A stretch of 64,000 bases of DNA, taken from Phallusia mammillata. Lineage: Eukaryota. Of this stretch, positions 1-31,020 are shown piece by piece. Made by a program: the position numbers and the translations under genes. Where the stretch lies: positions 23,560,001 to 23,624,000 of the forward strand of contig OZ281496.1 of the NCBI GenBank assembly GCA_965637545.1, written 5' to 3'. The notes under the pieces are model-generated. The model was not told where the DNA came from and did not search any database. It worked only from the letters and a program-made list of their open reading frames with translations. The number at the start of each line of letters is the position of its first letter. Positions within the stretch are counted from its first letter, which is position 1.

Positions 1-456
1 CATGTATGTTTAGGCGATACAGTGAATTAACAGCACAGTAAACCAGGATAAGAAAACAGCTGTATTTCAATTCGTATAACGTAGGGGTTATTGTCCTATT
101 TAACATGTTTTTTTACATCAGGCCACACGATTTGCGTGTTTATATTGAAGTACTTGCTAACATAATTTAAACTGTTACATTACTTGCTTTAAATTTTCAA
201 ATAAGCAGTAATCTGAAAATCCAGTCTACACACCCAAAACTGTTTTCTCGCTGATTGATCTTGAGACCAGCTGGCACAGAACAATATTACCTAATATATT
301 GGCATACCATTACCACATGAAAATACCAAGTAAATTTGCAAGCAGCGCTCCAAAAGGTTGCCGACCCCTTCGCTTAACTATTGGGAATGCATGTTCGTAA
401 AAAAGTGACTAAAGGTTATTATTTGTCATAACATAACGCTACGTTTGAAACTGCAG

Positions 457-3984: not shown

Positions 3985-5530
3985 AGATTGAGTTCACGAG
4001 ATAGACAAACACTCTTTAACTTTGCTACGCTGTTAACAAGCTACTGTGGAATATTAGTTTGTGTTTGCAAAATGGAAATCGCTGAACTGATTTTGCTAAA
4101 AAGTAATTTCTTCCGAAAATTATTCAAAAAAAACATTGTAAATATTCTCATCGCCACTGTTTTTCATTATTTGTTACCACTGTATTTAAAAAATATGTTG
4201 CGTAGTAAACACTGTTAATTGAATGCGAGTTTCATTTGCACCTTACCGCAAAAGTCACTAGAATTAAGCACCTGAATAGCAACGTCTAAATATACGACTT
4301 TTGCTTTGTAGCCTACATTTTTCTTAACAATTCAATCAAAAACGCCAGGAGAATATTAACCATATGGATGACCACTGATTTGTCCAACCAACACAAATTG
4401 TCGGTAACTTCACGTCTGCAATTTTTGAACAAAAAAAAAACTTTTTTTGCATAATATTTTGGAATGTTTGATTCTCTGACGACTTCTAACGTTTATAATG
4501 TGCAGCGTGATTCAGAAAAAAAATATTCACTATAGTTTATCAAGTTTACGGTTGTAGCGGCCGTGATATTAATGTGTACAATGTTTACATTAGCGCGTAC
4601 ATTTTGTGTTCAAGAATGTTTCATATCACGTTGCTTAGATTTACTTTTCTTGTTGTTGTTGTTGTTGCTGTATATGAAAATTAGTAAATGGTAATCGCAC
4701 TTTGTTTTGGTTTTCAGCAAAAGCATAGTGGTTTGTACCATGTGTACAAATAAAAAGAAACAAGTCTTCAAATACGTCCTTTAGAACTTGTTTCAAAGAT
4801 TGTATAGAATAGAATAGATGACAAGACATTTACTTTCGGAAAAAGTTCTGTAGGTAAAACGGCAAGGCTCGAATTGACACGAAACTGATTCATCTAGTCA
4901 TTCTAGTGTATAGTCAAAGAGGTTCGTTCAACCCTCTTGCACTTCTTATTTAGTCACGGGGGCTGTTATAACAACCTATAAAGTTGTGAACTAAAAGCGG
5001 GGTTTCAGATGCAGGTTAAACCTACCATTTCCGACTGCATTCGCATTGAAAGAGAGGACGTGTCGATTATGCGAGATGCGCAATGTGCACATATATCCAG
5101 TTAAGATGGCACGGACTATGAGCCAAAACAATTGCATCACTTCGGGCTTATATTTACAATTTCAGTTGCACAGAGAACATGGAAGTCTGTGGTTGGTTGT
5201 AGAAACTTGGCACAAACTGTTTGCCACAGTTATCTTTGCCAAGAAGTATATTCTTACATTTCATTTCTATTGTCTTTTGGAGTAAAGCCGTTTTAGTTAA
5301 GAGTTAGTCGTACAAGTTAAGGGATAGAATTAGCTAAAGTTGTTTATTTAAATCTTATCACTGACTACAACTTGTAACTCTAGCTGTTCAAGTCAGGCTT
5401 GGTTAGCAAAGGTCGGGGGGTATTCATAACACAGATGGAATTTTAGTAGCATTAACATTATTCATTCATTTGACAGCACTGTTAATTTTACTTGTAAAAA
5501 TGCATTACTAACATCCCAACTGATCGAGAC

Positions 5531-7975
5531 ATGTACAAAAGGCGTTGGAAAGTGAAAATGAGTGTTACAGTGGCACTTGTTTTCATGTTGTGCCTTGTCA
5601 AAATATCTTCTGGTACGTTAAACAGTTTGTGTTAAACATTTTAGTCTCTCACTAATAAAATGCATTTTAGTAACTCCAAAGTAAAATTGACTTTGAAAGT
5701 CAACATGTCAGCTAATCTAAAATACGATCTAATGTTTACGTTTAGGACGATCAAACACAAAACTGTTTACAAACGTAACCAAGCAACAATGGTGGAACTT
5801 TAACTATCGTCTTTACACTAAAATCTTCGCCACGTTAAATAATCTGAGTTGAAATTATTGCGATTAAAACTAATCAATCATATCATAATTATGCAGCACA
5901 AACATGCGGTGGTGACTTCAATGCAACAAGCACCACGCAAGAGATATTTTCAACTGGCTACCCCAATTTTTACCAAGACAGCTTGGATTGTAACTGGACG
6001 ATATCATCCCAAAATGGAAGTGTGTATATTAACCTGGTAAAGCTTGACACCGAGAGCTGTTGCGATTACTTGGAGGTAGATAATACAGTAGTACACTGTC
6101 TGTAACTGTCGTTAAACGCAAAGGAAATTACGCGCAGGCTTATGATTGCATCGATGGCAATATAACAACTTTAAGCAGTAGTTTCATGAAACGTCATCAA
6201 AAGCACCACGGTAATTAGAGCAACAATAGAGCAATGCGCAAGTTTCGGAAATTTAACGAAGCTCGTAAGTTGCCAACGCAAGTCTTATCCCTATCGTGGA
6301 AGTTACACCCTCTAAACATGTTTTTCAAACAATGTGAAAGAAGTATGTAAGTGTGTCGCATCCATATGAATATCTTCCGAATAGTGTTTTAGCTTGCAAA
6401 TCGTGCCTTGATCAAAAGTGTAGTTTTTTAGTGTGCTGCATCTTAACAAAAGTTTTGAAACACTGTGCCTGTAACAACACTTATACCATGATTTTGTTTC
6501 ATTTAGATTTACGATGGAGAATCACTGCTTGGCAGATTTCAAGGAAGTGCAAGTAACATAAACATGGTAGTTCACAACTCGTTTGCGCGGATTTTGTTTC
6601 ACACCGATTCGTCTGTAAGTCGCCCGGGATTTCTTCTGCAATATGCTCAAGGTGCGTGAACCAAAGTCAACTTTTATGAACAAATTTTCTTCGTTTGGGT
6701 AATGACAATAGGGGATAATGTCACCTTTAAATGACTCAAACAATATCGTGCTCATGTAACAGTAAACGCGTTCACACCATAGAACAATACACGGATATAA
6801 GTAAATCATTGCACATGACAGTACAGGTTCAACTTAATGCACTTCTAAGATGGCATCAGAGTTAAAATCTAACCCACTGAACTCAATGTCTAACTGGTAT
6901 GCACTTTAAAATGTAATAAATTTCCATACTTCCGTCCTTCAATCAATTATCAACCAATTATTCTTGATACGGCCATAAATACGTGTCTACTTTGTAGAGA
7001 AGGGCTCGGAAAACATATCATGAAATGGGGATACAAAGTGCGTTTAAAATAGTATGGGTTTGCACAACCTGCATGGATATCAAAATTGTCAATACCCCAT
7101 GTCATACCCAACCCAAGTAATTTCTGTTGTTGTAAACGCAAACTAACATACCAATATGAACAAACTGTTCACCCAAACATATCACAACTGCGACCCTTTA
7201 TTGGCCAAATCAGTTAACACGAAACAAATCGTACGAACTACAAAAGTCGCAACGTGTACGAAGTCTTTTGAAAAAGGAATGCAACTGTCGCTATCACAAT
7301 GAACAGAACGAAACATTTTACTCAAGTCATTTTCCAGCAGGAAATATGCTACACCATAGCCATGTAGCAAATTTAAATCTGTGCTAACGTTATTTGTCTT
7401 GTAGTGGCCACATGTGGATACAGCACAACCACAGTGAGCTCAACACTTTCACTGGATTTTTCCCAATCGTCGGAACCCCAACGATGTGGGTGGAACTTTT
7501 TCACATCTGGTGATAACAAGATCGGTTTGCAAACCGCTGTCACGTTACAGAACACAAGTGATAGTATTTTTGAGGCAAGTACACAACGTTGAATGGTACA
7601 AGCGGTCGATGTTTGTACAGATTTACTAAAGCAGAACCATTTTTTTAACCACAGTTTTGCAGCAAATATTAAACGGCAAAAACATGCTGTATTAACGTTG
7701 TTGACCGCTTATTTTTTTGGTACAAAACGAAGAGATGGATTATGAAACGACTAACATATTTATCATTTAAGCACCGATTTATATATCTATCAGTACCAAT
7801 CTATGCTTATCCGCCTACTTTTCGGATTTTTCGCAGGTTTACGAAGGTAACGCTCGCTCTTTGAATCTGGTTGGAGGCCATTCTGTCGCGCAAACCTTTT
7901 CGTCCATATCAATTCTTAGAGTCTACTACTTTTCAGCGGGTGCCGGTGACAGTATAAACTCTTCAGCAACGCAAG
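5531..7975 (+). CDS. Signal peptide plus two CUB domains (exons 1-5 of the giant aGPCR)
   Basis: Exon 5531-5612 is the signal peptide ([27 protein letters not shown]). Exons 5897-6075 and 6507-6651 give a canonical CUB (QTCGGDF...[18 protein letters not shown]...[14 protein letters not shown]...LGRFQG...[16 protein letters not shown]). Exons 7405-7574 (donor AG|GCAAGT) and 7837-7975 give a degenerate CUB (ATCGY...RCGWNF.../VYEGN...LRVYY). Confidence 0.85.
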
Positions 7976-10900
7976 GTAACAATTATGTTTTAGTACACAA
8001 AAAAGTATTCGACAAATACCAGAACAATGGTCCTAAACCTTTAGAATCTAAAAATCTAAAGTTTAGTCCATAAATTTTCCTTTCGATTAACCTTTTATCT
8101 AGAAGCCTGTAGAGTCAAAATTAAATCATACTCAAAGCTCTAAAGCCGACCCAAGTCCTTTTGGGGTTCCACGAGACCCTGATTAGAGTAAAACCAAAGG
8201 TAGACTGTAGAAAAGGATACGTTTAGATTAGGCATATTCTTGCAACTCTATTTCCGCAGTTCGCTGACAATTGTTTTGACTTTCGAGTGTGTTTATCGCC
8301 AATGAAAACATTGCATTATTCACAGAGGTCAACCAGTGTCAATCATTTCCTTGTCAGAACAACGCCACATGCAGCGACGGAGTACTTGATTACACTTGCT
8401 TCTGTATGCCAGGATACACTGGACGTAACTGCGAAACGGGTAAGGTGGCAAAAACATATTCCAATACAGCATTAAACAACTTTGACTATCACAAAATCGT
8501 CATGAGCATAAAGATACAGGGATAATAAAAGACGCAATTATTAAGACTACGTGACAAAAGCCAAAATATTTCAACATTGTTTAATCGTGACATCGATACT
8601 GGAGACGTACTACCTCACATCTTATTAGTGATTATGAGTTTAGGTGGTCGATACTAAATGAGGTTAATCAAAGTTCAGATTTTGTGCACGGCACATCGTC
8701 TTTTGCGTCGACTGTGAACAAACAACGACATCCGTTTTGTTAATTGGTTTACAGATATAAACGAATGCGAACCATTACCATGCCAACACAGTACAACGTG
8801 CATCGACAACATAGCAGATTACGAGTGCATTTGTCAACCTGGATACACAGATAAAAACTGTTCCTCAGGTAAAAACAATCGAAGTACAACACTAATGTCT
8901 TTGGGTGTGAAATTTATTTTTCCTTTAGCGTACAGTGAACAACAGCTGCATATCAATTAAATCTGTAACGTCGATCTGCCTTTAGTGACGTTTTTTATCT
9001 GCGTGTTATACCTGTTGGTCAATGATTATATTAAACTGAACTGAAACCCCTTAGAAAACTAATTTTGCGAATTCATGTCATGTTGTAGAGCAGTGGTTCT
9101 TAATCATTTTGTGTAGTTTTCCACTAAAGTCAGCCACCAAGTTCGAATACCCGCTTTGTTATTTTTATGATGATGTTTTGTGACGTGCATTAACAATTAT
9201 GTTCTTGATGCGTGACAATTAACCAAATTTAGGAGCTAGATTTTCGAGTAAAACTTAAAACAATAATTTAAGTATCAAAAACTTAAAGAATGTCCTTCTG
9301 CATGAACATAATTTCCTACTGGTGGGAAATTTCCATCAGGTTAAAAATCACTGTGGTAGATAACAACGATAAGACATCAGTTTAAATTTATTGTTCCTAG
9401 AAGCATTCTCCCTTACCGCGTTATAGTGGCAAATCAATTTAGCTCGCACAGTTTACAGCAAACTGTGCGACTAGTAGGAAATGACCAAAAGCTTTGATGT
9501 AGAAATAAATGAATGCGACGTGGTTCCATGTCAAAACAATGCAACGTGCCATGATCAAATCAACAACTATACGTGCTCATGCTTACCAGGCTACAATGGA
9601 ACCAACTGTGAAACAGGTATTTTCTGTTTGTTGCCTAAATCCATTTGAAAATCTTTGAGGCGAATAATTACCATTAGAAAAATTACAAACATCGAAAATG
9701 AAAATGCCTGCACCCTTTGCGGAAAAAATCAAAACCTATTCGAACAAGAAACGCGGTAATGTCGGATAAGCTAAATACCTATTCCTTTTAATTTTTACCC
9801 AGAACCGAAATTTTCTAAAAGGGAATTTAAGAAACAACATTACAATAACAAATTTTAATAGATTCCGTGCGTTTTGCAGCTAATTTTTACTGATATCAAA
9901 ATGTGTGTTGTGTGTCAACAACACCGCTATTATTTATTCAAAAAGATATCGATGAATGTGATCCAAATCCGTGCCAGCATGAAAGCATTTGCATGGACCT
10001 CATAAACGATTTTAGCTGCAACTGCACACCGGGATACACTGACAAGTCTTGTTCAACAGGTACACACACCAGCACGCTCGTTGTAACAAAACAAGATCAA
10101 CAAATTAAGACATGTTGTTTTAGGGGATGGTTCTAGTCTCAAATTGCAAATAGCAGCGTTGCATTTCAGTTTTACTAGCAGAGTTACAACAATATAATTA
10201 ATTCACCTAGCAAGTCCAAACTGTGCCATCAAATCGAGACCAAGTCAATATTGCATATTATGTATACTGGTACACATTAAAATAAGCAATGCTGTCGTGG
10301 GCCATTTTCAATCCTGACAAAAAGTTATACTAAATAAAACACGCAGTTTAAACTAAAATCAATAGATTGTGCGCCAATCCAAGTAAGTACTTGTTACTAA
10401 ATGTAACCCTTTTACGAAATGCAAAAAAAACACGATTTGATCAAATATTTCATAGTTTGTAAGACGTAGTTAAAAATAACACCTGCTTTATGCATACATT
10501 TTGTTACGGTTCACAAGAAATAATGATCATGAAACAAAGCAATACGCTGTTTTTGACCGATGTCTATTTTGGTACATACAGATATCAACGAATGCATATC
10601 TGAGCCCTGTGTTCAAGGAAACTGTACAGATTTGGTAAATAACTATACATGCACTTGCACACCTGGATATACTGGAAGAAACTGTTCAGTAGGTAAGGTC
10701 AAAAAAATCCGCAGCAAATCGTTGGGGTACAATAGAAAACTGTTGTGTTTCAACTAGATATCAACGAATGCGAATCAAGTCCTTGTCAAAACAACGGAAC
10801 ATGTAGTAACTTATTAAACGATTACAACTGCACATGTTTGCCTGGATATACTGACAAAAACTGCTCGACAGGTAAGTTTGGTAGAGACATCCAAAAATGG

Positions 10901-13900
10901 GGATTTTGACATCAAACTTTTGTTCACAGACATCAATGAATGCGAACCACCACCATGCCAACACAACTCAACGTGTATTGACAACATAGCAGATTACGAA
11001 TGCGTTTGTCAACCTGGATACACAGATAGAAATTGCTCAACAAGTAATAAAAAGCATGTGCGTGGATGCAATTGAGTTTAATAATAAGTTTTTCTCTTCC
11101 AGATATCAACGAATGCATACCGGACCCGTGCGATAATGGAAACTGCTCGGATTTGATCAATAATTTCACGTGTTCATGCACACCAGGATATACAGGACGA
11201 AACTGTTCAATAGGTAGGTAATTCTATAAAGAGATCAAAAACCGAGATACCAAGTTCCGTTATTTAACAGATATTAACGAATGTGATTCGAGTCCATGTC
11301 AAAACAATGCAACATGTGGAGATTTGATCAACGATTACAACTGTTCATGTATTCCTGGATATACAGGCAAAAACTGCTCAATAGGTACAGTCTTCTCACA
11401 CCAATCAATGTCATTATTTTATTTTTGCAAGTTTTCGTTTCGGGAATTAACGCAATAACTTCTACACTGTATACAGATATTAACGAGTGCTTTTCGGAAC
11501 CATGTATTTACGGAAACTGCACAGATTTGGTGAATAACTTCACATGCACTTGTACACCTGGATATACTGGAAGGAACTGTTCAGTGGGTAAGGTCTTACT
11601 AAATCTGCAATCAATTTCTTGTGCACAATATAAAACGGTTGTATTTCAACTAGATATCAACGAATGCGAAGCAAGTCCTTGTCACAACAACGCGACTTGC
11701 GGTAACTTAATCAACGATTACAACTGCACATGTTTGCCTGGATTTACTGACAAAAACTGCTCGACAGGTAAGTTTGATGAACACACATTAAAAAAAAGAT
11801 TTTGATATTAAAACTATGCTCACAAGACATCGATGAATGCCAATCGTCACCATGTAAACACAACTCAACGTGCATCGACAACGTAGCAGATTACGAATGT
11901 GACTGTCAACCAGGATACATGGACAAGAATTGCTCAACAGGTTGGAACTTTGCCACAAAAATGATACATGAAACACTGATACAAAGCTTATTGTTTAATA
12001 GATATCAACGAATGCACGCCAGGCCCTTGCGATTTTGGAAACTGCACAGATTTAATCAACAACTACACTTGTTCATGTGCACCTGGTTACACAGGACAAA
12101 ACTGTAGCATAGGTAACTAACGGTTTACGTGACAAAAATTGTAGCGGTGGAAAAAAACTAATTCTAATTGTTTTTTTGCAGATATTAACGAATGCGATTC
12201 AAGTCCTTGTGAAAATAATGCAACATGTGGAAATTTGGTAAACGATTACAATTGCACTTGTCGACCAGGATATACTGGCAAAAACTGCTCCATCGGTATG
12301 TTTTTGTTTGAAACAAATTCAAAACACAGAATGCAACGATCCAATTTGCAGATATAAACGAATGCGAACCAGCACCATGCCAACACAACTCAACGTGTGT
12401 TGACAACATCGCAGATTACGAATGTGTTTGTCAACCTGGATACACAGATAAAAATTGTTCAACAGGTAATAAAATTACATGCTTGTGGTTGCTTCAAATT
12501 GCAATAAAAAGTATTTCTATTCCAGATATCAACGAATGTATACCAGACCCTTGCGATAAAGGAAACTGCACAGATTTGATCAATAATTTCACGTGCTCAT
12601 GTACACCAGGATATACAGGAAGAAACTGTTCAATAGGTAGGTAATATTATGTCCAGAACTGCGTCGGAGATACCAAATTACGTTGATTAATAGATATTAA
12701 CGAATGTGATTCGAGTCCATGTCAAAACAATGCAACATGTGGAGATTTGATCAACGATTTCAATTGTTCATGCGTTCCTGGATACACTGGCAAAAACTGC
12801 TCTATAGGTACATATTTTCGGTACTCCCAATTGCTCAATGATGCAAACTTAACTTTGACAAAAACACTCTGATAATTGCCCGATTCATGCAGAGATTGAC
12901 GAATGCATACCGGAACCATGTGTTCACGGAAACTGCACAGATTTGGTGAATAACTTCACATGCACTTGCACACCTGGATATACTGGAAGAAACTGTTCAG
13001 TAGGTAAGGTTTCGCAAAATCCGCAATAAATCTATTGTTTGCAATATGAAACGGTTGTGTTTTAACTAGATATCAACGAATGTGAATCAAGGCCATGTCA
13101 CAACAACGCGACTTGCGATAACTTAATAAACGATTACAACTGCACATGTTTGCCTGGATATACCAACAAAAACTGCTCGACAGGTATTTTGCTAATATTT
13201 AGTGGAAATTTAGATTTCGTCGTGTAACGACGCTGTCTTCAGACATTAACGAATGTGAACCACTGCCATGCCAGCACAACTCAACATGCACTGATAAAAT
13301 AGCAGACTACGAATGCGATTGTCAACCTGGATACACGGACAAGAATTGCTCAACAGGTTGAAACTTTGCCACAAAAATGATACATGCAACAATGATACAA
13401 AGCTTGTTGTTCAATAGATATCAACGAATGCATGCCAGGCCCTTGCGAAAATGGAAACTGCACAGATTTAATCAACAACTACACTTGTTCATGTACACCT
13501 GGCTACATGGGAAGAAACTGCAGCATAGGTAACTCACGGTCTAACTTGACCAAAGTTGTAGCATTGAAAAATACGAAATATTATTTGTTTGGTACAGATA
13601 TTAAAGAGTGCGATTCAAGCCCTTGTGAAAATAATGCAACATGTGGAAATTTGGTAAACGATTACAATTGCACTTGTCGACCAGGATTCACGGGCAAAAA
13701 CTGCTCTATCGGTATGTTTTTGTTAAAACAAACCCAACCACAGAATGCAACGAACTAATTTGCAGATATAAACGAATGTGAACCAGCACCATGCCAAACC
13801 AATTCAACGTGTATTGACAATATAGCAGATTACCAATGCGTTTGTCAACCTGGATATACGGATAAAAATTGCTCAACAGGTAATAAAACTACATGCTTGT

Positions 13901-16900
13901 GGGTGTTTTAAAATTCAACAATTAGGTTTTCTCTTCCAGATATCAACGAATGTATACCTGACCCTTGCGATAACGGAAACTGCACAGATTTGATCAATAA
14001 TTTCATGTGTTCATGTACACCAGGATATACAGGAAGAAACTGTTCAATAGGTAGGTAATATTATGTCCAGAACTGCGTCGGAGATACCAAATTACGTTGA
14101 TTAATAGATATTAACGAATGTGATTCGAGTCCATGTCAAAACAATGCAACATGTGGAGATTTGATCAACGATTTCAATTGTTCATGCGTTCCTGGATACA
14201 CTGGCAAAAACTGCTCCATAGGTAAATATTTTCGGTACTCCAATTGCTCAATAATGCAAACTTAACTTTGACAAAAACACTCTAATAATTGCCCGATTCA
14301 TGCAGAGATTGACGAATGCATACCGGAACCATGTGTTCACGGAAACTGCACAGATTTGGTGAATAACTTCACATGCACTTGCACACCTGGATATACTGGA
14401 AGAAACTGCTCAGTAGGTAAGGTTTCGCAAAATCCGCAATAAATCTCTTGTTTGCAATATGAAACGGTTCTGTTTTAACTAGATATCAACGAATGCGAAT
14501 CAAGGCCATGTCACAACAACGCCACTTGCGATAACTTAATAAACGATTACAACTGCACATGTTTGCCTGGATATACCGACAAAAACTGCTCGACAGGTAT
14601 TTTGCTAATATTTAGTGGAAAGTTAGATTTCGTCGTGTAACGACGCTGTCTTCAGACATTAACGAATGTGAACCACTGCCATGCCAGCACAACTCAACAT
14701 GCACTGATAAAATAGCAGACTACGAATGTGACTGTCAACCAGGATACACGGATAAGAATTGCTCAACAGGTTGAAACTTTGCCACAAAAATGATACATGC
14801 AACAATGATACGAAGCTTGTTGTTCAATAGATATCAACGAATGCATGCCAGGCCCTTGCGATAATGGAAACTGCACAGATTTAATCAACAACTACACTTG
14901 TTCATGTACACCTGGCTACACGGGAAGAAATTGCAGCATAGGTAACTCACGGTCTAACTCTAACTTGACCAAAGTTGTAGCATTGAAAAATACGAAATAT
15001 TATTTGTTTGGTACAGATATTAACGAGTGCGATTCGAGCCCTTGTGAAAATAACGCAACATGTGGAAATTTGGTAAACGATTACAATTGTACTTGTCGAC
15101 CAGGATTCACGGGCAAAAACTGCTCTATCGGTATGTTTTTTGTTGAAACAAACCCAACCACAGAATGCAACGAACTAATTTGCAGATATAAACGAATGTG
15201 AACCAGCACCATGCCAAAACAATTCAACGTGTATTGACAATATAGCAGATTACGAATGCGTTTGTCAACCTGGATATACGGATAAAAATTGCTCAACAAG
15301 TAATAAAACTACATGTTTGTGGGTGTTTTAAAATTCAACAATTAGGTTTTCTCTTCCAGATATCAACGAATGTATACCGGACCCTTGCGATAATGGAAAC
15401 TGCACAGATTTGATCAATAATTTCACGTGTTCATGCACACCAGGATACACAGGAAGAAATTGTTCAATAAGTAATATTATGACCAGAATTTAAAAACTGA
15501 GATACCAACTTTAATTATTTAATAGATATTAACGAATGTGATTCGAGTCCATGTCAAAACAATGCAACATGTGGAGATTGGATCAACGATTACAATTGTT
15601 CATGCGTTACTGGATACACTGGCAAAAACTGCTCTATAGGTAAATTTTACAGTACTCAAATAGTTTTTGGGTGCGAAATATCACTTCAACAAAAACACTC
15701 CAATAATTACCCCAAATTCATATAGATATTAACGAATGCATACCAGAGCCATGTGTCCACGGAAACTGCACAGATTTGGTAAATAACTTCACATGCACTT
15801 GTACACCTGGATATAATGGAAGAAACTGTTCAGTAGGTAAGGTCTCACAAAATCCGCAACAATCTTATTTGTTTACAGTATACAAACGGTTGTATTATAA
15901 CTAGATATCAACGAATGCGAAACAAGTCCTTGTCACAACAACGCGACTTGCGGTAACTTAATCAACGATTACAACTGCACATGTTTGCCTGGATATACCG
16001 ACAAAAACTGCTCAACAAGTAAGTTAGGTGAACACACATAAAAAGGGATTTTGAAAGAAAAATTTTGCTCACAGACATCGATGAATGCCAGTCGGCACCA
16101 TGCCAACACAACTCAACATGCACTGATAAAATAGCAAACTACGATTGTGACTGTCAACCTGGATACACGGACAAGAATTGCTCAACAGGTTAAAACTTTG
16201 TCACGAAAATAAAACATGAAACACTGATACAAAGCTTATTGTTCCACAGATACCAACGAATGCATGCCAGACCCTTGCGATAATGGAAACTGCACAGATT
16301 TAATCAACAACTACACTTGTTCATGTACACCTGGCTACATGGGAAGAAACTGCAGCATAGGTAACTCACGGCCTTATGTGACAAAACTTTCAGTAGTGCC
16401 AAATACCAAATTCTATTTGTTTGACGCAGATATTAACGAGTGCGATTCCGGCCCTTGTGAAAATAACGCAACATGTAGAAATTTGGTAAACGATTACAAT
16501 TGTACTTGTCGATCAGGATTCACTGGCAAAAACTGCTCTATCGGTATGTGTTTGTTAAAACAAACCCAAACACAGAATGAAACGAACTAATTTGCAGATA
16601 TAAACGAATGTGAACCAGCACCATGCCAAAACAATTCAACGTGTATTGACAATATAGCAGATTACGAATGCGTTTGTCAACCTGGATATACGGATAAAAA
16701 TTGCTCAACAGGTAATAAAACTACATGCTTGTTAGTGATGGGACGATACCAGGATTTGAAGCGAGTACCGATACCGAGTACGAGTACCACACGTATATAC
16801 CTTCGATACCGAGTACTTAAGTGTAGTGTTGTACTTAGTTGTATATTAGTGGCTAATTTTTCTGCCATGGTCGGGGTACAGGCGTGCACACACACATGCA

Positions 16901-19900: not shown

Positions 19901-22900
19901 ACAACATAGCAGATTACCAATGCGTTTGTCAACCTGGATACACGGATAAAAATTGCTCAACTGGTAATAAAATTACATGTTTGTGGATGTTTTAAATTTA
20001 AATAAAAAGTTTTTCTCTTCCAGATATTAACGAATGCATACCGGACCCTTGCGATAATGGAAACTGCACTAATTTGATCAATAATTTCACGTGTTCATGC
20101 ACACCAGGATACACAGGAAGAAATTGTTCAATAAGTAAGTAATTTTATAAAGAGTTAAAAAACTGAGATACTAACTACTGTTATTTAACAGATATTAACG
20201 AATGTGATTCGAGTCCATGTCAAAACAATGCAACATGTGGAGATTCGATCAACGATTACAATTGTTCGTGTGTTCCTGGATACACTGGCAAAAACTGCTC
20301 TATAGGTAAATTTTTACAGTACTCAAATAGCTCTTTGTTTCAAAATATCACCTTGACAACTAGAAGGGTGGCTTTCTGATATACTTCCATTTTATATATT
20401 CTATACGATATTTACCAATTTACTATACACATAATTTGATCTACACATATGATTGTTTTTGTAAACAGAAACTAATGGGTCCCCATACGCTGTTTGTGCG
20501 GATTTACGGTAAACAAACGTTGCGGTGACTTTTAGATTTTTAGGAACAAATTTTTAGAAAGCATTAACCCAACAATAAAAATTTTTTGTTCGTATTCTTT
20601 TTGCACTATTATTGTCATATAATTACAAATACTAAAAAAAGAACAAAACAAATAATTTCAATTGATTCTCTTGCTTTGACCCAGATATTGTCGTCCAAGG
20701 TCGGGTTTTAAACACATTTTTTTCTAGAAAGCTGTAACAGTTGTGTTACAGACACTTTAAATTAAAAAGCAATTTGCTACAAGTGTACACATAACAAATT
20801 GTTTTTTATTTAACTTTGTTTCGCAAAACCATTGACCTGTAGTAACCTCTCAGGGTGCACACGCCAAACGACTGTTTGACCTGTTGACACCGTTTTCAAT
20901 AGCACTGTTCAACAACACCGTTTAACCTAATTTATACATGCCTTGAGCGTTGATTCCTAAATTTGTTGCAAAAAACGCTACGTTATGACGAAAGAAAGTT
21001 CGTGTTGGTAATACCTACTAGTTGACCTTAAGTAACCCGTGGTCATGCGGCGGCCGACCTGACAACGAGCATTTAAAAAAACATTTATCACGAAAAATTC
21101 GTAACGGTGTTGTAATGCCTACAAGTTGACCTTTAGTGACCCATGGTTATGAGACGGCAAAGCTGACAACGAGAATTTAAAGATCATTTATTGAGGCGTT
21201 CGAAAAAGTTAAGTTTATTAAATTTCATATTTATGTTGATCAACGATGTTTTGCCTGACATAAACGAAACCGAACTACGTTTATCGAGTTCGAATTACGT
21301 CTTAGGTGTAAAACCTGCGCCAAAACTGAAAATGCGCGTGATAACTTAATAAAACGACACAGCATTGCTGCACACACAAAAACTGATTACTAATCACCGA
21401 AACGACTGTCTCGTAAAACGTCTGTCCAGACGTCAAGCTGAGCACTCCCGCTCTGCCGCCTTAATCGTAAACCAGTGAATTCCTCCCTTGGGACTTATAT
21501 CTGACTGATAGCGTACACATATTATGGATTGTAAAGGTAACTGGCAAAATTTTAAATACTAAACGAATATCCTGCTTAAACAATTGTTAACTTTTTCAAA
21601 TATTTCTGCACCATAGGGCATGTATTTCTGCCTTAAAACTAAAACCGTTTATTTCGGGGTTTAAAGGGTAAAAAATGGGTGAATCCGAAAAAAAGATACA
21701 AAATTCTTTAAAAAACTTTACATTGCACCAAACAACAAAGCATGAAACTCCTAGATGCTGTACTTTAGTCAGTACAGCCGTTTCAAAAATTTTACGTTTT
21801 GGGGGCCTGTGGGTGAACCGCTGGGTCAATCGGGGTCAAACTTCAGGAGGATCAAATTTGGATTATTAACTAACATCTCTGTAAATTTGAATAAATTTGG
21901 AGCACTCTTTCTTGACCAAACGCGTCTCACAAGCCAGCGTTAGACAGAAAAAAGAATACGGACAAAAACAATATGTGTCCCCTTCAGGGAAGGGGACCTA
22001 TAATAACACTCCAATAATTACCCCAAATTCATTCAGATATTGATGAATGTACACCGGAACCATGCGTTCACGGAAACTGCACAGATTTGGTGAATAACTT
22101 CACATGCACTTGCACACCTGGATATACTGGAAGAAACTGCTCAGTAGGTAAGGTCTCACAAAAACAGCAAATCATCTCTTGTTTACAATACAAAACGGTT
22201 GTGTTTCAACTAGATATTAACGAATGCGAAGCAAGTCCTTGTCACAACAACGCGACTTGCGGTAACTTAATCAACGATTACAACTGCACATGTTTGCCTG
22301 GATATACTGACAAAAATTGCTCGACAGGTAATTTGTTAATAATTAGAGGAAAGTTAAATTTCGTCGTGTAATAATGCCTTCTTCAGACATAGACGATTGT
22401 GAACCGCTGCCATGCCAGCACAACTCAACATGCACTGATAAAATAGCAGACTACGAATGTGATTGTCAACCAGGATACACGGACAAGAATTGCTCAACAG
22501 GTTGAAACTTTGCCACAAAAATGATACATGAAACACTGATACAAAGCTGATTGTTTAACAGACATTGACGAATGTACGCCAGACCCTTGCGATACTGGCA
22601 ATTGCACAGATTTAATCAACAACTACACGTGTTCATGTACACCTGGCTACACGGGACGCAACTGCACCTTCGGTAACGTACCATACATTTCCAAAGCTGT
22701 TTTGGATTGTTTTGCAAAAAAACTATTTTTTTGTACAGATATTAACGAATGCGATTCAAGTCCTTGTGAATACAACGCAACATGTGGAAATTTAATAAAC
22801 GATTTTAATTGCACATGTTTGCCTGGATATACTGGCAAAAACTGCTCTATTGGTACGTTTTACTTCATGCTATGGTTGAAAAGTATCGCTCAAATAATAA

Positions 22901-25900
22901 ACCGATCAATAATTTCCCTGACGCAAACAGATATTGACGAATGCATACCGGAACCATGCGTTCACGGAAACTGCACAGATTTGGTGAATAACTTCACATG
23001 CACTTGTACACCTGGATATACAGGGAATAACTGTTCAGTGGGTAAGGTCTAAAAAATTAGTTAATGTTGTCGCGCTATTATACAACGTTTTACCTTACAA
23101 CTTGTAATACCGTAGATATTAACGAATGCGAATCAAGTCCATGCGAAAACAACGCCACTTGTGGAGATTTAATCAACGACTACGTTTGTACATGTTTGTC
23201 AGGATATACTGACAAAATCTGCTCGACAGGTAAGTTTTGTGAATATATGGCAAATACAATACTGCAGCTGCATCACGTATTGCTTTACTACATCTGCAGA
23301 CATAGACGAATGTGAGCCGTCACCATGCCAACACAATGCAACGTGCATTGATGAAATAGCGGATTACGATTGTATTTGTCAACCTGGATTTACCGACAAG
23401 ATCTGTTCAACAAGTAATAATAAATTTTACAAAGCCAAAGGACATTCTTGCCTTTTAAAACAATTATTGCTTAACAGATATAGACGAATGTACAGCACCC
23501 TCTTGTGATTTTGGAAACTGCACAGATTTAATCAACAACTACACTTGTTCATGTACACCTGGCTATACGGGAAGAAATTGCAGCATAGGTAACTTATAGC
23601 GCATGTAGCAAACCATTTTGAACTTTTATGCAAAAACTGATTTATCGGTGCAGATATTAATGAATGCGAGTCAAGGCCTTGCGAAAACAACGCAACATGT
23701 AAAGATTTAACAAACGATTTCAATTGTACTTGTTTACCCGGATATACTGGGAGAAACTGCTCTATCGGTAAGTCTCATCGTACAGTGATTTTGCAATATA
23801 GTCGGATGTTATTTTACTTGTGGTACAGTATGTTTTCGTTTTGACCTTCGTTGCATGTTGTAATGTATAAAAGGGCTATTAAATCTGATGATAACTTAAA
23901 CTTTTCGTATAATGCAACAAATGCGCGTGGAAAACACTGTTACTTCGTGTTATTTAAACTTTAAACGAAAGAGTACTTGCCATCAAAAATGCGTTGAAAA
24001 TACCCAAGGTACCTGAGGTTGTGAAGTCTCGGTTTCACTTGCTAGAGTAGAAATTAAATCGAAGTTAGAGATTGTGCGTCTGCGTGTAAGTATTGCTGCG
24101 CATTGTCCGCTAAATTGCCAATTTATACACACTACGTCATATTCAATGATGTATCAACATCTGAAATACATTGAGCTTGAACTTTAGTAGGTGTAGTCAT
24201 TTAGAAACTTCTATAATTTTGGTGCCTGTGGTTCTTCCGAAATCAAAGTTAAAAGTTACAGTACACAGCCTTGGATAACTATCTATCTCGTGTGTAATTT
24301 TGAAATAGTTAAAACTATTTTTCCTTGTCCAAAAGGCTAGGTTCATATGTTAAAAGAAAACGCATAAAAACAAAATACGACTACCATGACACTGATTTTG
24401 AATGTTCAGATATTGATGAATGTGCCAGTGATCCTTGCAATTTCCAGGGAACGTGTAATGATCAAGTTAATGGATTTCATTGCGAATGTCTGAATGGCTA
24501 TTCTGGCCCAGACTGTTCAATACGTAAGTATTAAACTTCATACAGTTAAGTACAACACTATCCGGAAATTTGAGACCAGAACCATAACGTGATATATGAG
24601 CGAAAATACCCCAGTTACAGTGAATAACTGTGTACCATTTTTCTCTGAAAGGGGCATTAAATAATTGCTACGATATAATACTCTTAGCCTGTCTGCTTTC
24701 TCAATGGTATTAAAATAGCCCGCACAAACTACTATTAAATTTACAAACAAGAATGTTGCCAGGCGAAGTCATTGCCGGTTTGACATGGCAAGTAAACTGG
24801 CAGACGGTGTTCAATACGTTGCCGACCACTAACTATGCGATACATATTAAAACATTTTTACTCGAAAAAGGAAACGTATTGCAGTGGCAGAGCAAAATCT
24901 GGTCGCAAATAAACTTCTAAGTTTATGTTTAGTTCCGGAGATTTGCCACAGTGCAATGTGTCATCAATACGCGACGTGTTTTACAAATACATCGCAGTTT
25001 TATTGCATATGTAACAGAGGATTTGAGGGTGATGGAAATCGCTGCCAGCGTAAGTCTTTTTGTATAGGCTTTACTTTATTCGTAAGACTTTTATTATAAC
25101 CTATGCTACATTAGTGAGTTTTTTATTCCAACATGTATTGGTAAGTCTTATGCATTATATTTGTAAATCTTTAACTAGAATATATGTCTTTGGTAACGTA
25201 CGAAACTGAACAATTTTGTTAGCGTTTTGCTTGCCTGGTGTGGTATTTGACGAAACAACAAATCGCAATTACACCTTCTCGAGATCCAGTCTAAGTGATT
25301 CCGCTAGTTCAATGGAAAACTGCTCCAGTGGTAAGTTAAACTGCTGTCATACTCGAGTTCATAAGTAACCACTACTAGTCTATAGTGTATTGTGAACGCA
25401 GGTGGAAGATCAATAGCATCAGTAAACTGTCTTCTCGACACAGACGATCAAACAAAGGCAACATTCCAAAACATTCGAGCACTAGATTGTAATCAAAGCA
25501 TAGCAGCAGCTCTTTCAGTTCAAGTAAGCTTTGTAAATAACTAATACTCCAAAGCACAAGTACGACATTTGTTAGTCAACAAAGGTGGTGATTTCAAAAG
25601 CGTGCTCACAACAACGCATCTTTGTTTTAGATTCGAGCGACAACAGAAGCAGTGGCAGAATCATTGTCCAAACTAAAACTATTAACATCAACCAATGTTA
25701 GTTCAACCGACGCCAACGCCGTAGCGGATGCTTTGATAAGCATCACCTTACTTGATCCGGAAAAAGTTAATGTAAGCAACAAATAAGAAACAATTTGGTG
25801 ACCTTTAAACCTTCAATGAAAGTTTTGTTTGTCTGCACGTTCTAGATCAGCGCATCTACTCTTCTCGATGCGTTTTTAGCCATTGATCAAATCACAGGCT

Positions 25901-28900
25901 CGCTTCCTCATGCAACAAGGTACAGCCGCTATAGCCAACAGTACAAACTTATTCTGTTCATACCTTACTTGCTGTCAACCTCGTAGCGTTTGTTGTGAAT
26001 TGCGTACATTTGTAATCCAAAACAATCACTCAAGCTTTTAACACTGTTGCGGAAAATTGTTATCCTATACCAGGGGTGAACACCCTGTGTTCGTACGGTA
26101 ACATGCGGTCTACCTCCTAGGAGATGAATTTATGCGGCGGTGAACGTACATGTATAAAAATAAACCGGAAGCCGTGAATAGGTTTAAATTATATTGTATT
26201 GCTGGACATTTAGTCTTAAAAACTGATTTGAATGGATTTTGCTGATGGAATATGTATCATACCGGGGCAGTAGCCATGGGCGCTAGATTTATTGCACGCC
26301 TACTATGTGCAAACATTTAAATAAACAGGCCAACAAACAACGTAACAATGCAAAGAGACGACACACACAGTTAAGACTGATTGCCAAATCGTTCAGCTAA
26401 ATCCATAGATGAAGTAAAAATGGACTTTTAGGTACCAGTAGATCGGATGCCCAGACAAATTTTATATCTTTACATAATTGATATGAAAACGATAAACATG
26501 GGGAAACCTGGCGACCGTGGGTAAAATAAGGACCCATGATGCAGTTGTACACCCCTGTTCTAAACTGTCAAACTAGCTTTAACACTGTTGTTTTATGCAG
26601 TGACTCTTCTGAACGCAACCAGAAGTTGTTGGGTGCTCTTCAAACGATGGCTGATCGAGTCGAGTTACCGGAAAACCAAACAGAACTTACTTTGACCACT
26701 GGTGGACTGACTGTACAGGTTAAAAACTATATATTAGTGCTATTACGTTGTCTAAAGAAATTGAAAAAATGCTTTGCGACAGCATCCAAACGCACACAAA
26801 AATAGAAAAAATTATGTAGAACTAGGCTCGCCAGTTCAAACTGTCATGTATATCTTAGTTTGGTATGAATATACTACGTCTACGTGTTTTTCTTATTAAA
26901 CATAAAGCCCCCGAATAAAAACTCACAATTTTCCTTTGAAATAAAACATTATGGTATCATACGTCCTTGGAATGCCTTGCCCAGTACATTGTTGTTTTTT
27001 CAAAAGGTTCAAGAAATGGAAAAAGACGGCGATGCATTTCGCCATGTTACATTTAAACCGCGGAACAAGGCCGGAATACCTTATGAACCACCTATAGCAA
27101 GCACCTTACCCGCTGATCTACTACAGCTAGCCTCTACGAACATGGGCACAGATGATCTTAGAGTTTCGTTTGTTTTGCATGAAACTAACTCTCTATTCCC
27201 ACCGGTGGAGGATAAAATTACTCGGGTAAAACAATAAGTTGAAATCTCGCCACGAGTTTGACTTCTTAGACCAAAATCTCTAATAAAAAAGCATTCATTT
27301 TGGCAAACCAATCCAGCAACAACCATCACGTCAAATTGATTAGCGTCTATATCTTTATTACAGATTATTTCTGCAAACATAAAAGGTTACGAAGGCCAGG
27401 TTAACAATATCAATGTTGCTAACTACTTCAACAACGTTTTTGAAAGGCAAGGAGCTGTTCCACTTGAATCGAATCCACTTAAGGTACGTTAGATACAGAA
27501 ATGCCAAACCAAGAGGTTTCGCATGCAACGTAACGTCCACACCACAGGCTGTACTGTTTGTTTTCAACTCCACAAACAATTTGAATTTTGCAGCCACGCT
27601 GATGGTAGTAACGGTACCAATCAATACGATTCTAACAGAATTATAACGCACTTGTCTATTTAGTTTCAGCCAAATTCTATTGTAATTTCACATACAGTAA
27701 TACAAGTTTATGAATGTTTTACAGGAAACCGTGACAAGGACCCAGTGCGTTAGTTTGGATCCCAACTTCAAATGGTCTCCTGATAAGTGCAGACTCGTAT
27801 CTAACCCAGGATCTGCACCACGCTGTGAATGTCAGGCTCTTGCAAACTTTGCAATGATTATTGTAAGTTGGCGTGTCACGGGCATCAAGGTCCACTATTA
27901 TGTTTTTTATTAAAAATACAACAAATATCGCGGGGTAGCCTGTATATGCGCTTATCCGAGACGATTTTTTTTTTAATTCAACAAAATAGGCAAGTTATAT
28001 ATCGTAAGCAGAGCCGTTAGTCGGGCTGGGCTTTTCGGGTCGGGTTTGGGCTTAAGTTTAAAAAAGGACTTGCTTGGGACCTGACATTTGGGTCAATTTC
28101 GCCGTATGCCTCAACAATTTCTAAGCCTATTTAGGGCTTTGTTTTTAAACAAAACTTGGTTTATGCCGGGTTTGAACTTTTGAATCCGAGCCACAGTTTC
28201 TTAGCCGCTTATTACTCAGATACCAAAGACTTAAAAATTTTTTGGGAAAGTTAAAAATCTATTCCATTCAGTCTTCGATCCTTGTCGAGCAACACTGAAA
28301 GGATTAATGACATATATAATTGATAGTAGGAAGTTAAGGACAGTGTATTTTTAGCATTACTTTTTGTATTTGAGATTAAATGGTGTTTACCGTAATTTTT
28401 TATTTTGCACAGAGATCAGTAGTTTTACCATCCGCAGCAGAACTAAATGTCGCTACATGGGTTGGATGCATACTTTCGATTGCAGGGTTATCCATGACTA
28501 TTATAATTCATTGCAGTGTCAAGTGAGTTTAACAGATTTCAAGAATTTAATTTACTGAACAAATGTTTCATTCACCAGGTCACATATATATTTGTTAAGG
28601 TTTTTGCCAAACTGTTTTTTTACTTTTTAACTTTACCAAAGTATTCAATTGGTCACCAATGTTCAAATAGGGTTTCAATCGCCGTTAATATACATATGCT
28701 AGTGAAGCCCAACAGTATAGTCATTGAACTAACTCATTAAACATTCACAGGAAGTTACGAAGTAAGAAGCCAACCATGTTTTTGATAAACATGTCGTTTT
28801 GTCTACTTGTGGTCAATGTTACATTTCTTACTGGATCTGGGAAAGTTGAAAACAGAAGCGAATGCTACATTATAAGTGCAATTTTACACTTCTTTTTGCT

Positions 28901-29508
28901 GGCAGCTTGGTTCTGGATGTCGGCGAATGCTTATGACTTATACAATGCATTGGTTAAAGTAAGTCTGAGAAAATGTGTGGGCTATTATTGAACAAATATT
29001 GGTTACTCACTTAAATAATCCTTGCAATTTCACACTGGATAACCAAAATGTACAAGTGCTGCTTTTCCCAAAAATATCCAACTACAATAGTCTAACCAAC
29101 ACACTTTTGAATATGTATATATCTGATTGGTAATTGCTCAATAATTTGACAACTAAAGGGCTAAATAGAAATTACTTGGGATTGATGGTGTCACTCTCAC
29201 ATCATAAAAAGAGCCAAAAGTCAATGGCTCTTTGTCAAAAACAAATCAGTTCAAAATCCTCAAAACATTTACATGACTAACTTGCATCAACAATACAGCA
29301 CCACAACCACAACGGTATTGGCAATCCTAACTTTGTCCCCTTTTGTTTTACAATCAGGTAATGGATAGGTCTTCTGTTAACATTCGACTAGTGTCAGCTC
29401 TGGTGTCTTATATTGCCCCCCTGGTAATTGTTGTGGTGAACATTGGGGTGGCAGTTTTGCACTCTGATCAACAGAACTATCGTGAAGGTATCGTACAGTG
29501 TAAAACCG

Positions 29509-29542
<34 letters not shown>

Positions 29543-31020
29543 TAATTTTATGTTCAACTGAAATATACATGCATCAACACATAAAAAAATACTTTCCAAG
29601 CACCAAATTTCATGACTAAGTTTTGAACATTATCAGTTGATTATAAGACAGACTAAACTACAATCACTGCAGACTGCAAAAAAATGTGACTCACCTTTTT
29701 ATTACAGATGACAACTTGTTCGAATCTGCATACCATGCACGACATATTTGTTGGTTACATCTCAGTTCACTTAACTACGGATTCTTGCTTCCTATTGGAA
29801 TACTGGCCATATTTAACTGCTGTCTCTTCGGTGTCATATTCAGCAGTCTGACATGCAGAAGAACGCAGGTAAATCTAGATATACATGTTTATATTGAAAA
29901 TCTAAAGACTTGTGTGGAAAACAAGAGCCCCAAAAATACTTTTTACTTTACTGCATTAACATATATAGTTAGTTTATACAAGTAAGTTTTTGTACAGTAC
30001 AATTTGTACAATCACAAACTATATGAAAATTACAGTGTTTTTATTTAGTACAACTCTGTGTCCTAAATGAAAGTTTTAATAATAATTAATTATATATTAC
30101 AAATCTAGTATATGAACACAATAAAATGTATTAGGTTCAGTCTTCTGCACAACAAAGAAGCACTTCACAGGATTTTATGCTCGCAATGACTTTGGTGCTT
30201 ATGTTGGGTTTGACCTGGTTGTTTGGTTTTCTAATGCTTTTTGCTGATGATGTTACCTATCAATCAGCAATGGCCTGGTTGTTCACATTACTTAATTCAA
30301 ACCAAGTAAGATCATAAATATATCATGTTACACAGATAAAAGTCACCGGTAAAAACAGAAAAATATAGAAATAAAGATATGTTTTCAAAATAAAAACACG
30401 AAAATCCAACCAAATTTGTTTCTATGTTAACTATTATATTTCTAATCTAATAGTTTGCCATATTCAGATAAATATACAAAAAATATGTTTGAAGGACATC
30501 TAATATCATGATTTTGTTTTTAAAGCTTTGGCTATGTTTTTTTTCTTCTGTGCATTGTAAACAAAAGAAATTAACATAGTGACAGTACCATAAACATGTC
30601 AACAGATAGGTGTATGCAATGATGATACACTATTAACAATTGCCTTCACTGTTTTTAGCTTCAATACTGAATATATGTGTAAAAAATGTAAAATCGTAAA
30701 CCAATAGTACATTATGATGACTAAGAAAAAAGAATAAAAAATAATTGAATAAAAATTGTTGAACAGGTTAAAAACTTACTTTCAAGTTTTTAATGATGTT
30801 TTATTATCAGGGGCTATTCGTTTTTGTTGCCAACTGTCTTCGAAATGTTGCTGTAAGAAGCTTATGGCTACATCCATTGATGAGAAAACTTGGGTGTGGC
30901 AGGTTCGCTAAAGTCCAAAGAAAACAAGGCATACGGCGAAACAATGACACAAGCACAGTTGGCACTGTTTCAACTTCTGTAAATAAATCACAAAACATTA
31001 AAACTGAGCCACAGCCTTAA
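5531..31020 (+). CDS. Giant adhesion GPCR: SP-CUB-CUB-EGFx69-HormR-like-GAIN/GPS-7TM, 88 exons, ~3,513 aa
   Basis: The 88 hand-read exons sum to 10,542 nt (3,514 codons including the stop) with consistent intron phases, from ATG 5531 (alternative ATG 5558) to TAA 31020. Three donors are GC (7575, 17312, 18724). Domain blocks are listed separately. Confidence 0.88.
9091..9353. mobile_element. Old hAT/Charlie-like MITE in an EGF intron
   Basis: Degenerate TIRs cagtggttcttaat / ggttaaaaatcactg. Flanks ttgtagag and tggtagat match at 6/8, consistent with a decayed 8-bp TSD. Confidence 0.6.
11477..20305 (+). repeat. Six tandem ~1.41-kb units, each with 8 EGF exons and their introns
   Basis: Units start at 11477, 12893, 14306, 15726, 17570 and 18982 (period 1412-1420 after removing one MITE). 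Exon size pattern is 111-114-114-111-114-114-111-114. Five-exon modules flank the array at 10582, 22037 and 22931. Confidence 0.93.
16733..17153. mobile_element. 421-bp hAT-type MITE inserted in an intron of EGF unit 4
   Basis: TIR TAGTGATGGG / CCCATCACTA, perfect 8-bp TSD ATGCTTGT (16725-16732 and 17154-17161), subterminal GATACCGAGTAC-type repeats. The empty site is visible in paralogous introns (e.g. from 13880). Confidence 0.92.
20360..22004 (+). mobile_element. Non-autonomous Helentron/DINE-1-like element (~1.65 kb)
   Basis: Starts (aa)CTAGAAGGGTGGCT and ends with hairpin GTCCCCTTC-agg-GAAGGGGAC followed by CTATAAT(aa). Inserted in an A-run without a TSD (empty site ...ac-aaaaa-cactc in the paralogous introns at 12808 and 15640). 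Internal ~103-bp duplication at 21009/21112. Termini are shared with 33582-34924. Confidence 0.75.
25223..27862 (+). CDS. HormR-like domain, GAIN domain and GPS of the giant aGPCR
   Basis: In-frame exons 25223-25330, 25402-25523, 25631-25771, 25846-25919, 26601-26718, 27007-27225, 27364-27483 (IISANI) and 27725-27862 ([41 protein letters not shown]). The HormR-like label for the two Cys-containing exons rests on position and Cys spacing only. Confidence 0.82.
26071..26557. mobile_element. Old hAT-like MITE in a GAIN-region intron
   Basis: TIRs caggggtgaacac / gttgtacacccctg. Flanks tcctatac and ttctaaac match at 6/8. Confidence 0.62.
28009..28200 (+). mobile_element. Decayed end of the CAGAGTTGCAAG hAT-like family
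   Basis: cagagccgttagtcgggctgggcttttcgggtcgggtttgggc aligns by eye to the left end of 57836-61108. Right boundary is uncertain. Confidence 0.5.
28413..31020 (+). CDS. 7TM domain and C-terminal tail of the giant aGPCR
   Basis: Exons 28413-28522, 28751-28958, 29358-29487, 29708-29868, 30135-30305 and 30811-31020. Sizes and phases match paralog A (110, 208, 130 vs 127, 161, 171 nt). Motifs [42 protein letters not shown]. Confidence 0.92.
29511..29540. repeat. (AT)15 microsatellite
   Basis: Perfect dinucleotide run in an intron, just downstream of the 29487 splice donor. Confidence 0.95.

Follow-up and report, generated by a model that had tools for sequence, protein, structure and literature searches.

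The stretch analysed here, called the window below, is 64 kb of the genome of the ascidian Phallusia mammillata (contig OZ281496.1, positions 23,560,001 to 23,624,000; C3:23.56 Mb), and its forward strand carries what appears to be a known type of receptor in an extremely expanded yet recognisable form: a CUB-tipped adhesion G protein-coupled receptor (GPCR) with 69 EGF modules. The window contains zero N at a G+C content of ~37%, and three-frame translation of the + strand between 5.5 and 31 kb reveals dozens of EGF modules that follow the pattern D-I-N-E-C...C-x-C...G-x-N-C in short open stretches. An initial annotation had described this region as a single spliced frame of 88 exons and ~3,513 amino acids (aa). 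The exon chain that we built independently agrees closely, with 88 exons and a coding sequence of 10,563 nt for 3,520 aa that runs from the ATG at 5531 to the TAA at 31018-31020 (+); this terminal TAA is the sole stop, and splice phases are compatible at every junction. The 87 introns of this model have a median length of 66 nt and donors that are GT in 84 cases and GC in 3. All three GC-AG introns (at 7574/7575, 17311/17312 and 18723/18724) use the donor GCAAGT, and a position paralogous to these donor sites, at 20134, reads GTAAGT. The predicted 3,520-aa product contains 441 cysteines and 192 N-glycosylation sequons.

Gene model and domain order

Exons outside the EGF array were chained by open frame, splice consensus and phase, with a collinear alignment to the Phallusia protein P0002 as a guide. 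Database and profile searches were run per exon or with database relatives; counting, tblastn against loci of the same genome and a tree of the seven-transmembrane (7TM) region drew on the joined model. The two exons of the first CUB domain match the Pfam CUB profile with E 1.1e-9 (profile positions 1-62) and E 7.5e-4 (positions 65-110). The second, CUB-like domain carries the CUB cysteine pattern and a phase-0 intron before V-Y-E-G that is equivalent to the phase-0 intron before I-Y-D-G in the first; it also has a weak phmmer match (E 8e-4, small local set) to CUB domains of two paralogs, L001 and L002, that Pfam recognises.

At the other end of the product, two features that define class B2 receptors are present, namely a secretin-type 7tm_2 domain and a GPS directly ahead of the first transmembrane helix (TM1). 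The GPS scores 26.7 bits against a Pfam cutoff of 22.5, and its motif ends a few residues ahead of the start of the TM1 exon. Pfam 7tm_2 is matched on three exons (28380-28523, E 0.013; 28728-28988, E 1e-10; 30135-30314, E 1.3e-4), and hydrophobicity outlines six clear segments and a weaker TM7. For the GAIN region, the part of P0002 that precedes its 7TM was modelled as four helices followed by a beta domain (predicted local distance difference test score, pLDDT, 58.6; predicted template modelling score, pTM, 0.61), and this model matches the solved GAIN domains of BAI2, BAI3, latrophilin, GPR126 and GPR110 (E 2e-10 to 6e-7). All features are listed in Table 1.

Table 1. Features of the predicted receptor gene (window coordinates; cbEGF, calcium-binding EGF)
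Feature	Position	Strand	Basis
Exon 1: start codon and signal peptide	5531..5612	+	Basic n-region, hydrophobic core with peak at residues 10-28; donor phase 1
CUB1, exons 5897-6075 and 6507-6651	5897..6651	+	Pfam CUB on both exons; phase-0 intron between L-E and I-Y-D-G
Second CUB-like domain, exons 7405-7574 (GCAAGT donor) and 7837-7975	7405..7975	+	Cysteine pattern, intron position
68 cbEGF modules in single exons of 111 or 114 nt, phase 1-1	8326..24523	+	Six-cysteine pattern, splice geometry
Intron with ~420-nt interspersed repeat (repeat 16730-17185)	16712..17200	+	Genome copies
Intron with ~1.65-kb interspersed repeat	20306..22036	+	Genome copies
EGF module 69, EGF_3 type	24933..25049	+	Pfam EGF_3 E 3.8e-7; collinearity with paralogs and Phallusia P0002
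Cys-containing linker, exons 25223-25330 and 25402-25523	25223..25523	+	Sub-threshold GPR128_N similarity
GAIN-region exons 25631-25771, 26545-26718, 26908-26953, 27014-27225 and 27364-27483 (25846-25919 optional)	25631..27483	+	Collinear with P0002
GPS exon, motif C-E-C-Q-A-L↓A-N-F-A-M-I-I	27725..27862	+	Pfam GPS E 8.2e-6
7TM and C-terminal tail, exons 28413-28522, 28751-28958, 29358-29487, 29708-29868, 30135-30305 and 30811-31020	28413..31020	+	Pfam 7tm_2, phases, hydrophobicity; stop 31018-31020

The EGF array and its repeat structure

The cbEGF exons are built to one pattern: in 68 of 68 modules, all picked out by a strict six-cysteine pattern, the AG acceptor precedes the Cys1 codon by 11 nt and the donor follows the Cys6 codon by 7 nt, with both boundaries in phase 1. 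Such shared geometry is far beyond chance. Donors are GT in 66 of these exons and GCAAGT in the other two, and sampled array exons match Pfam EGF and EGF_CA. The calcium-binding stalk proposed in the initial annotation is consistent with the presence of both calcium-binding motifs in all 68 modules (D/N-x-D/N-E/Q-C at the start and C-x-D/N-x4-F/Y-x-C), where the start motif was tested loosely, with E at position 1, K at position 3 or D at position 4 also allowed and one of these used in 5 of the 68. Consensus sites for Notch-type O-fucose occur in 43 modules and for O-glucose in 28, and 176 of the N-glycosylation sequons fall within the array.

Modules 8-57, and partly 58-62, follow a period of eight module types that corresponds to an eight-exon cassette of ~1.41 kb in ~7 copies. 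These units are pairwise 83-97% identical and no two are the same, so the array is not a duplication made by the assembly. Read data point in the same direction: in the DNA run X1, a single contig of 8,143 nt covers 5400-10676 (CUB1 to EGF4) with a single difference, and repeated 31-mers that occur 5-7 times in the assembly reach 6.7x the depth of unique ones (depth versus assembly copies: 6.7 versus 6.0 and 3.1 versus 2.0). No second copy of the array unit was found elsewhere in the 240-Mb assembly. Mis-assembly of the array, which the initial annotation had named as grounds for abandoning its reading, is thus improbable.

Introns within the array are mostly 52-92 nt long, apart from two long ones that are each filled by an interspersed repeat. 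The succession of modules carries on across both, with type B followed by type C at the larger one, 20306-22036. The ~1.65-kb repeat in this intron has 87 matches in the genome, of which ~15 are nearly full-length (89-98% identical) and many are partial, which suggests a young, recently active family of elements. The ~420-nt repeat at 16730-17185 gave 1,022 first-look candidates in the genome and at least 40 scored copies at 87-91% identity, and it resembles a short interspersed nuclear element (SINE) or a miniature inverted-repeat transposable element (MITE). Outside the locus, the best DNA relatives of the array's EGF exons are single exons, 73-76% identical, that lie beside two adhesion-GPCR paralogs at C2:30284972-30309465 and are a possible source of the cbEGF exons.

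Paralogs, cleavage site and family placement

By the exon that covers TM2-3, the closest paralogs of the window gene are L001 and L002 at C3:24.76-24.78 Mb (65-66% identical). Like the window gene, both encode two CUB domains (both Pfam-positive), EGF_3, the linker, GAIN and 7TM in this order, together with a non-cleavable GPS, but they differ in having no cbEGF exon at all, and further CUB exons may lie upstream of them. Since L001 and L002 join them directly, the CUB head and the 7TM core form one conserved unit, as the initial annotation had claimed in placing the CUB/EGF and GAIN-7TM parts within a single gene. Judged from exon order, the cbEGF array is an insertion between the CUB head and the receptor core, in compatible phase. 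Three more CUB-like matches lie upstream of L001 (L005 93-3791 (-), equal to C3:24768093-24771791), so that members of the subfamily seem to differ in how many CUB domains they carry. Another relative, P0007, combines CUB, GPS and 7tm_2 on a 3,544-nt contig that is almost entirely coding.

The C-terminal 770 aa of the product are collinear with P0002 from the last two EGF modules through TM7. P0002 begins inside an EGF module and is therefore N-terminally truncated. We considered it as an ortholog of the window gene and rejected this, because it matches a three-copy locus on C5 at 82-94% identity and is the ortholog of that locus, hence a paralog here. The protein libraries contained neither the window gene itself nor an ortholog by the TM2-3 exon, the best match being 62% to a 142-aa fragment.

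The canonical site of GPS autoproteolysis is H-L↓T/S, which is typical though not universal. At this position the sequence of the window gene is Q-A-L↓A-N-F-A, which lacks both the His at -2 and the Thr or Ser at +1. As both the base and the nucleophile are missing, self-cleavage of the receptor is predicted to be unlikely. Departures from the consensus are also found in the upstream neighbour (R-L↓A), in P0002 (K-L↓A) and in L001 and L002 (Q-L↓G), and H-L↓T is kept in P0007 and many other relatives. The core of the tethered agonist, x-N-F-A-M, is retained in the window gene. With the cleavage consensus absent, the classical model of mechanosensing by pulling off the N-terminal fragment would be of limited use for this receptor.

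The 7TM phylogeny that the initial annotation had asked for, comprising 39 rows, pairs the window gene with P0002 (support 99/93) and next groups these two with a pair of Ciona EGF receptors. All four fall within a clade of 13 rows (99/97) to which the ADGRG7, ADGRG2 and latrophilin-like rows do not belong; the deeper order of the clades is not settled by this tree. Named members of the clade are ascidian, and the subfamily is probably tunicate-specific. Together, the domains and the ascidian clade support the view, much as first proposed, that this adhesion GPCR is lineage-specific and carries 69 EGF modules in an array tipped by CUB domains. This placement agrees with the Ciona 'Unclassified Adhesion' group of Kamesh et al. 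2008, in which two members have EGF repeats (PMC2396169).

The nearest database entries are Ciona XP_026691118.1 and its isoforms ('neurogenic locus Notch protein-like') and Phallusia CAB3245044.1 ('fibrillin-2-like'); in all of them, as in the window gene, an EGF array directly precedes EGF_3, linker, GAIN and 7TM. Both belong to the same 7TM clade, and these receptors share an atypical GPS consensus with the window gene. The Ciona receptors have ~18-21 EGF-like modules and no CUB, whereas the window gene has 69 modules and two CUB domains. The statement of the initial annotation that this architecture matches no described protein therefore needs to be narrowed, since EGF-array GAIN-7TM receptors of ~18-21 EGF modules are already in databases for Ciona. 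The combination of two CUB domains and 69 EGF modules on an adhesion GPCR predicted to be uncleavable is undescribed as far as we checked, short of an architecture-wide survey, and with the same proviso the array is the longest run of EGF modules on a GPCR known to us.

Several vertebrate families resemble parts of this receptor. ADGRG7 (GPR128) is the best named match of the relative P0007, at up to 67% query coverage, and GPR128_N similarity on the linker stays under the Pfam cutoff of 27.2 bits throughout, with 13-16 bits (E 0.017-0.09) in the window gene and 14-27 bits (E 5.6e-5 to 0.045) at the equivalent place in five relatives. The GPR128 GAIN subdomain models had no match among the ascidian proteins tested. 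Antedon P0173, an invertebrate 'ADGRG7-like' protein, combines EGF, GPR128_N, GPS and 7tm_2, with its EGF modules ahead of GPR128_N. By its 7TM, however, the window gene falls outside ADGRG7, which forms its own clade (100/100) apart from that of the window gene (99/97).

ADGRG6 (GPR126) shares with the window gene a CUB domain at the N-terminal tip and a similar GAIN-7TM region (PDB match E 3.2e-27 for P0002). Its architecture is CUB-PTX-SEA-HormR, without an EGF array. Open frames between CUB1 and EGF1 gave no Pfam match to pentraxin, SEA or HormR, and the gap of only 350 nt between the second CUB-like domain and EGF1 leaves no room for pentraxin or HormR. An ADGRG6-type architecture was therefore rejected, its CUB not being followed here by pentraxin, SEA and HormR. 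The ADGRE or EGF-TM7 receptors (EMR, CD97) likewise have an EGF stalk that is partly calcium-binding; similarity of the 7TM to ADGRE5 is no higher than to other families, and ADGRE receptors have 2-7 EGF modules, no CUB and a cleaved GPS. ADGRV1 (VLGR1) serves as a working analogy only: it is a giant adhesion GPCR with a long tandem calcium-binding array that forms extended extracellular links, but its modules are Calx-beta rather than EGF and its subfamily is unrelated. PDB sequence matches of the GAIN-7TM part of the P0002 family are about equal for ADGRL3, G2, E5 and G6. With these matches equal, the tree leaving the gene unplaced among vertebrate families and the ADGRG7 lead below threshold, assignment to any one vertebrate family was rejected. 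CUB domains in invertebrate adhesion GPCRs have been reported for amphioxus (PMC2246102).

A tandem adhesion-GPCR paralog lies immediately upstream, at 1-3985 (+) of the window, and continues further upstream into L004. Its GPS is located at ~523 (R-L↓A-N-F-A), its 7TM exons at 1306-3903 and its stop near 3985, and its TM2-3 exon is 56% identical to that of the window gene. An EGF_3 module and pieces of GAIN lie within L004; no cbEGF array was seen and no CUB was detected in the sequence examined. Genome-wide, the adhesion-GPCR TM2-3 exon has at least 77 matches, often in tandem clusters (C3:24.74-24.97 Mb, C2:21.69-21.75 Mb, C2:32.9-33.1 Mb and C5:17.37-17.44 Mb). Ciona is reported with 30 adhesion GPCRs (PMC2396169), and at least 77 matches here would mean that ascidian repertoires can far exceed that number.

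Elsewhere in the window, an uninterrupted open reading frame of 1,968 aa occupies 39963-45869 (-) in an island of 48-52% G+C. It encodes a Pao-retrotransposon peptidase, a reverse transcriptase, an integrase and DUF1759/DUF5641, a domain set that identifies the element as a long terminal repeat (LTR) retrotransposon of BEL/Pao type with an intact polyprotein frame.

Proposed origin, mechanism and competing explanations

We consider the locus best explained, with a probability of roughly 0.7, as a single ascidian gene in which an array was inserted into a CUB-CUB-EGF_3-linker-GAIN-7TM ground plan and its cassette then amplified, giving a 3,520-aa receptor. The ground plan would have consisted of a signal peptide, at least two CUB domains, one EGF_3-type module, the Cys linker, GAIN and 7TM. 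Symmetric phase 1-1 cbEGF exons would have entered the phase-1 intron between the last CUB and EGF_3, and the eight-exon cassette would subsequently have been amplified ~7 times by unequal crossing-over, resulting in 68 cbEGF modules and one EGF_3.

The product of such a gene would be heavily disulphide-bonded and heavily glycosylated. Calcium-bound cbEGF pairs are rod-like in fragments of fibrillin and Notch, at ~2.5-3 nm per module. By analogy, the calcium-bound array may form a semi-rigid rod of at most ~170-200 nm when fully extended, with the CUB domains at its end as a putative ligand-binding tip. The receptor would probably stay in one piece, given a GAIN site without both catalytic residues, and ligand or force would reach the 7TM through the intact GAIN and tethered-agonist region rather than by shedding of the N-terminal fragment. 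Because all cbEGF exons are of phase 1-1, skipping of cassettes could produce isoforms of differing stalk length. It is rather doubtful that all of this holds together, that is, that the complete 3,520-aa protein is produced and functions uncleaved, CUB-tipped on a calcium-stiffened rod of 69 EGF modules whose length is tuned by cassette amplification and perhaps by exon skipping.

Several observations count against a single full-length receptor or soften particular parts of it. The proposed length of the rod and its calcium dependence, like the ligand and the mode of signalling, are inferred. Pfam was blank on either exon of the second CUB-like domain in two attempts, and the GAIN fold was modelled, modestly, for the paralog P0002 only, with which the window gene is collinear. 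Several exon boundaries in the GAIN region are ambiguous: exon 25846-25919 is optional and would require one more exon, of which none was found, and exons 26908-26953 and 27014-27225 have alternatives, although every choice that can be completed stays in frame. Transcript data are negative in the runs searched. Three RNA-labelled runs (X3, X6 and X8) yielded no contig of the gene over 5400-11399, just two short fragments, 90-95% identical, from other EGF genes. Next to none of the words of 23600-29600 occurred in 14 listed RNA runs, and this stretch was found in only two runs of an unlabelled kind, one of which, X1, behaved as DNA. These RNA runs are small and of unrecorded tissue, and their null result is not evidence of absence.

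A more favourable picture comes from coding constraint. Array exons of the same type are 93.2% identical compared with 77.7% for the introns that follow them, with the exon better kept in 108 of 121 pairs, and pN/pS among them is 0.18; these pairs are non-independent, all coming from one array, and gene conversion may add to the similarity of the exons. As a whole, the pattern fits exons in use rather than decaying copies.

The most serious competitor, which we regard as a real if not favoured possibility, also assumes one gene but holds that all 88 exons are seldom or never joined in one transcript, cassette skipping leading to much shorter receptors for which the array is a reservoir of isoforms. 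Any subset of the 68 cbEGF exons could be skipped in frame, and the Ciona relatives are annotated with many isoforms of varying EGF content (isoforms X3, X4, X5 and X8), yet intact splice sites in 68 of 68 exons and the coding constraint argue that each exon is used at least sometimes.

Far less probable is a silent or decaying locus, where the array was recently amplified but the gene is no longer expressed. The absence of RNA for the 5' part in three runs and its near-absence for the 3' stretch in 14 would fit this, as would the two interspersed repeats that landed in introns and the redundancy that is likely in a genome with at least 77 adhesion-GPCR TM2-3 exons. Against it stand 10.5 kb of coding sequence free of stops and frameshifts, usable splice sites at 87 of 87 introns, the low pN/pS with exons clearly better kept than introns, and the small size and unrecorded tissue of the RNA runs.

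A pair of genes, the first for a secreted CUB-EGF protein and the second for a separate EGF-GAIN-7TM receptor, is more improbable still. No RNA joins the two parts in the runs and stretches searched, and in relatives such as the upstream neighbour and P0002 no CUB was detected alongside EGF_3-GAIN-7TM in the sequence examined. However, L001 and L002 connect CUB-CUB directly to EGF_3-GAIN-7TM, there are zero in-frame stops along the chain, and past exon 1 no signal-peptide-like hydrophobic segment was seen ahead of TM1. Neither do the introns offer a natural boundary, since those of the array are short apart from the two filled by repeats, and module order continues across the largest. Least credible of all is an assembly artefact with an inflated or collapsed copy number: tandem repeats of 1.4 kb that share up to 97% identity are difficult for assemblers and k-mer depth is slightly over the assembly copies, but every copy is distinct, depth ratios stay near the assembly counts, no second unit exists elsewhere in the assembly, and neither the frame nor the order of modules is broken at any point.

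The long outer parts of adhesion GPCRs are regarded as sensors of contact and force, and the roles of length, rigidity and GAIN cleavage are debated. If the locus is silent or its array mostly skipped, it would be an ordinary lineage-specific expansion. As a single gene with an inserted and amplified array, it is a clean example of how an ectodomain can grow through amplification of a symmetric-phase exon cassette, and it combines a stalk of extreme length and predicted rigidity with a GAIN domain predicted to be unable to cleave itself. Paralogs with the same head and core but no array provide a natural pair for comparing signalling and force. Should the full-length, uncleaved receptor prove true, this gene would offer a natural test case for the way in which the length and rigidity of an ectodomain act in adhesion-GPCR signalling without shedding of the N-terminal fragment.

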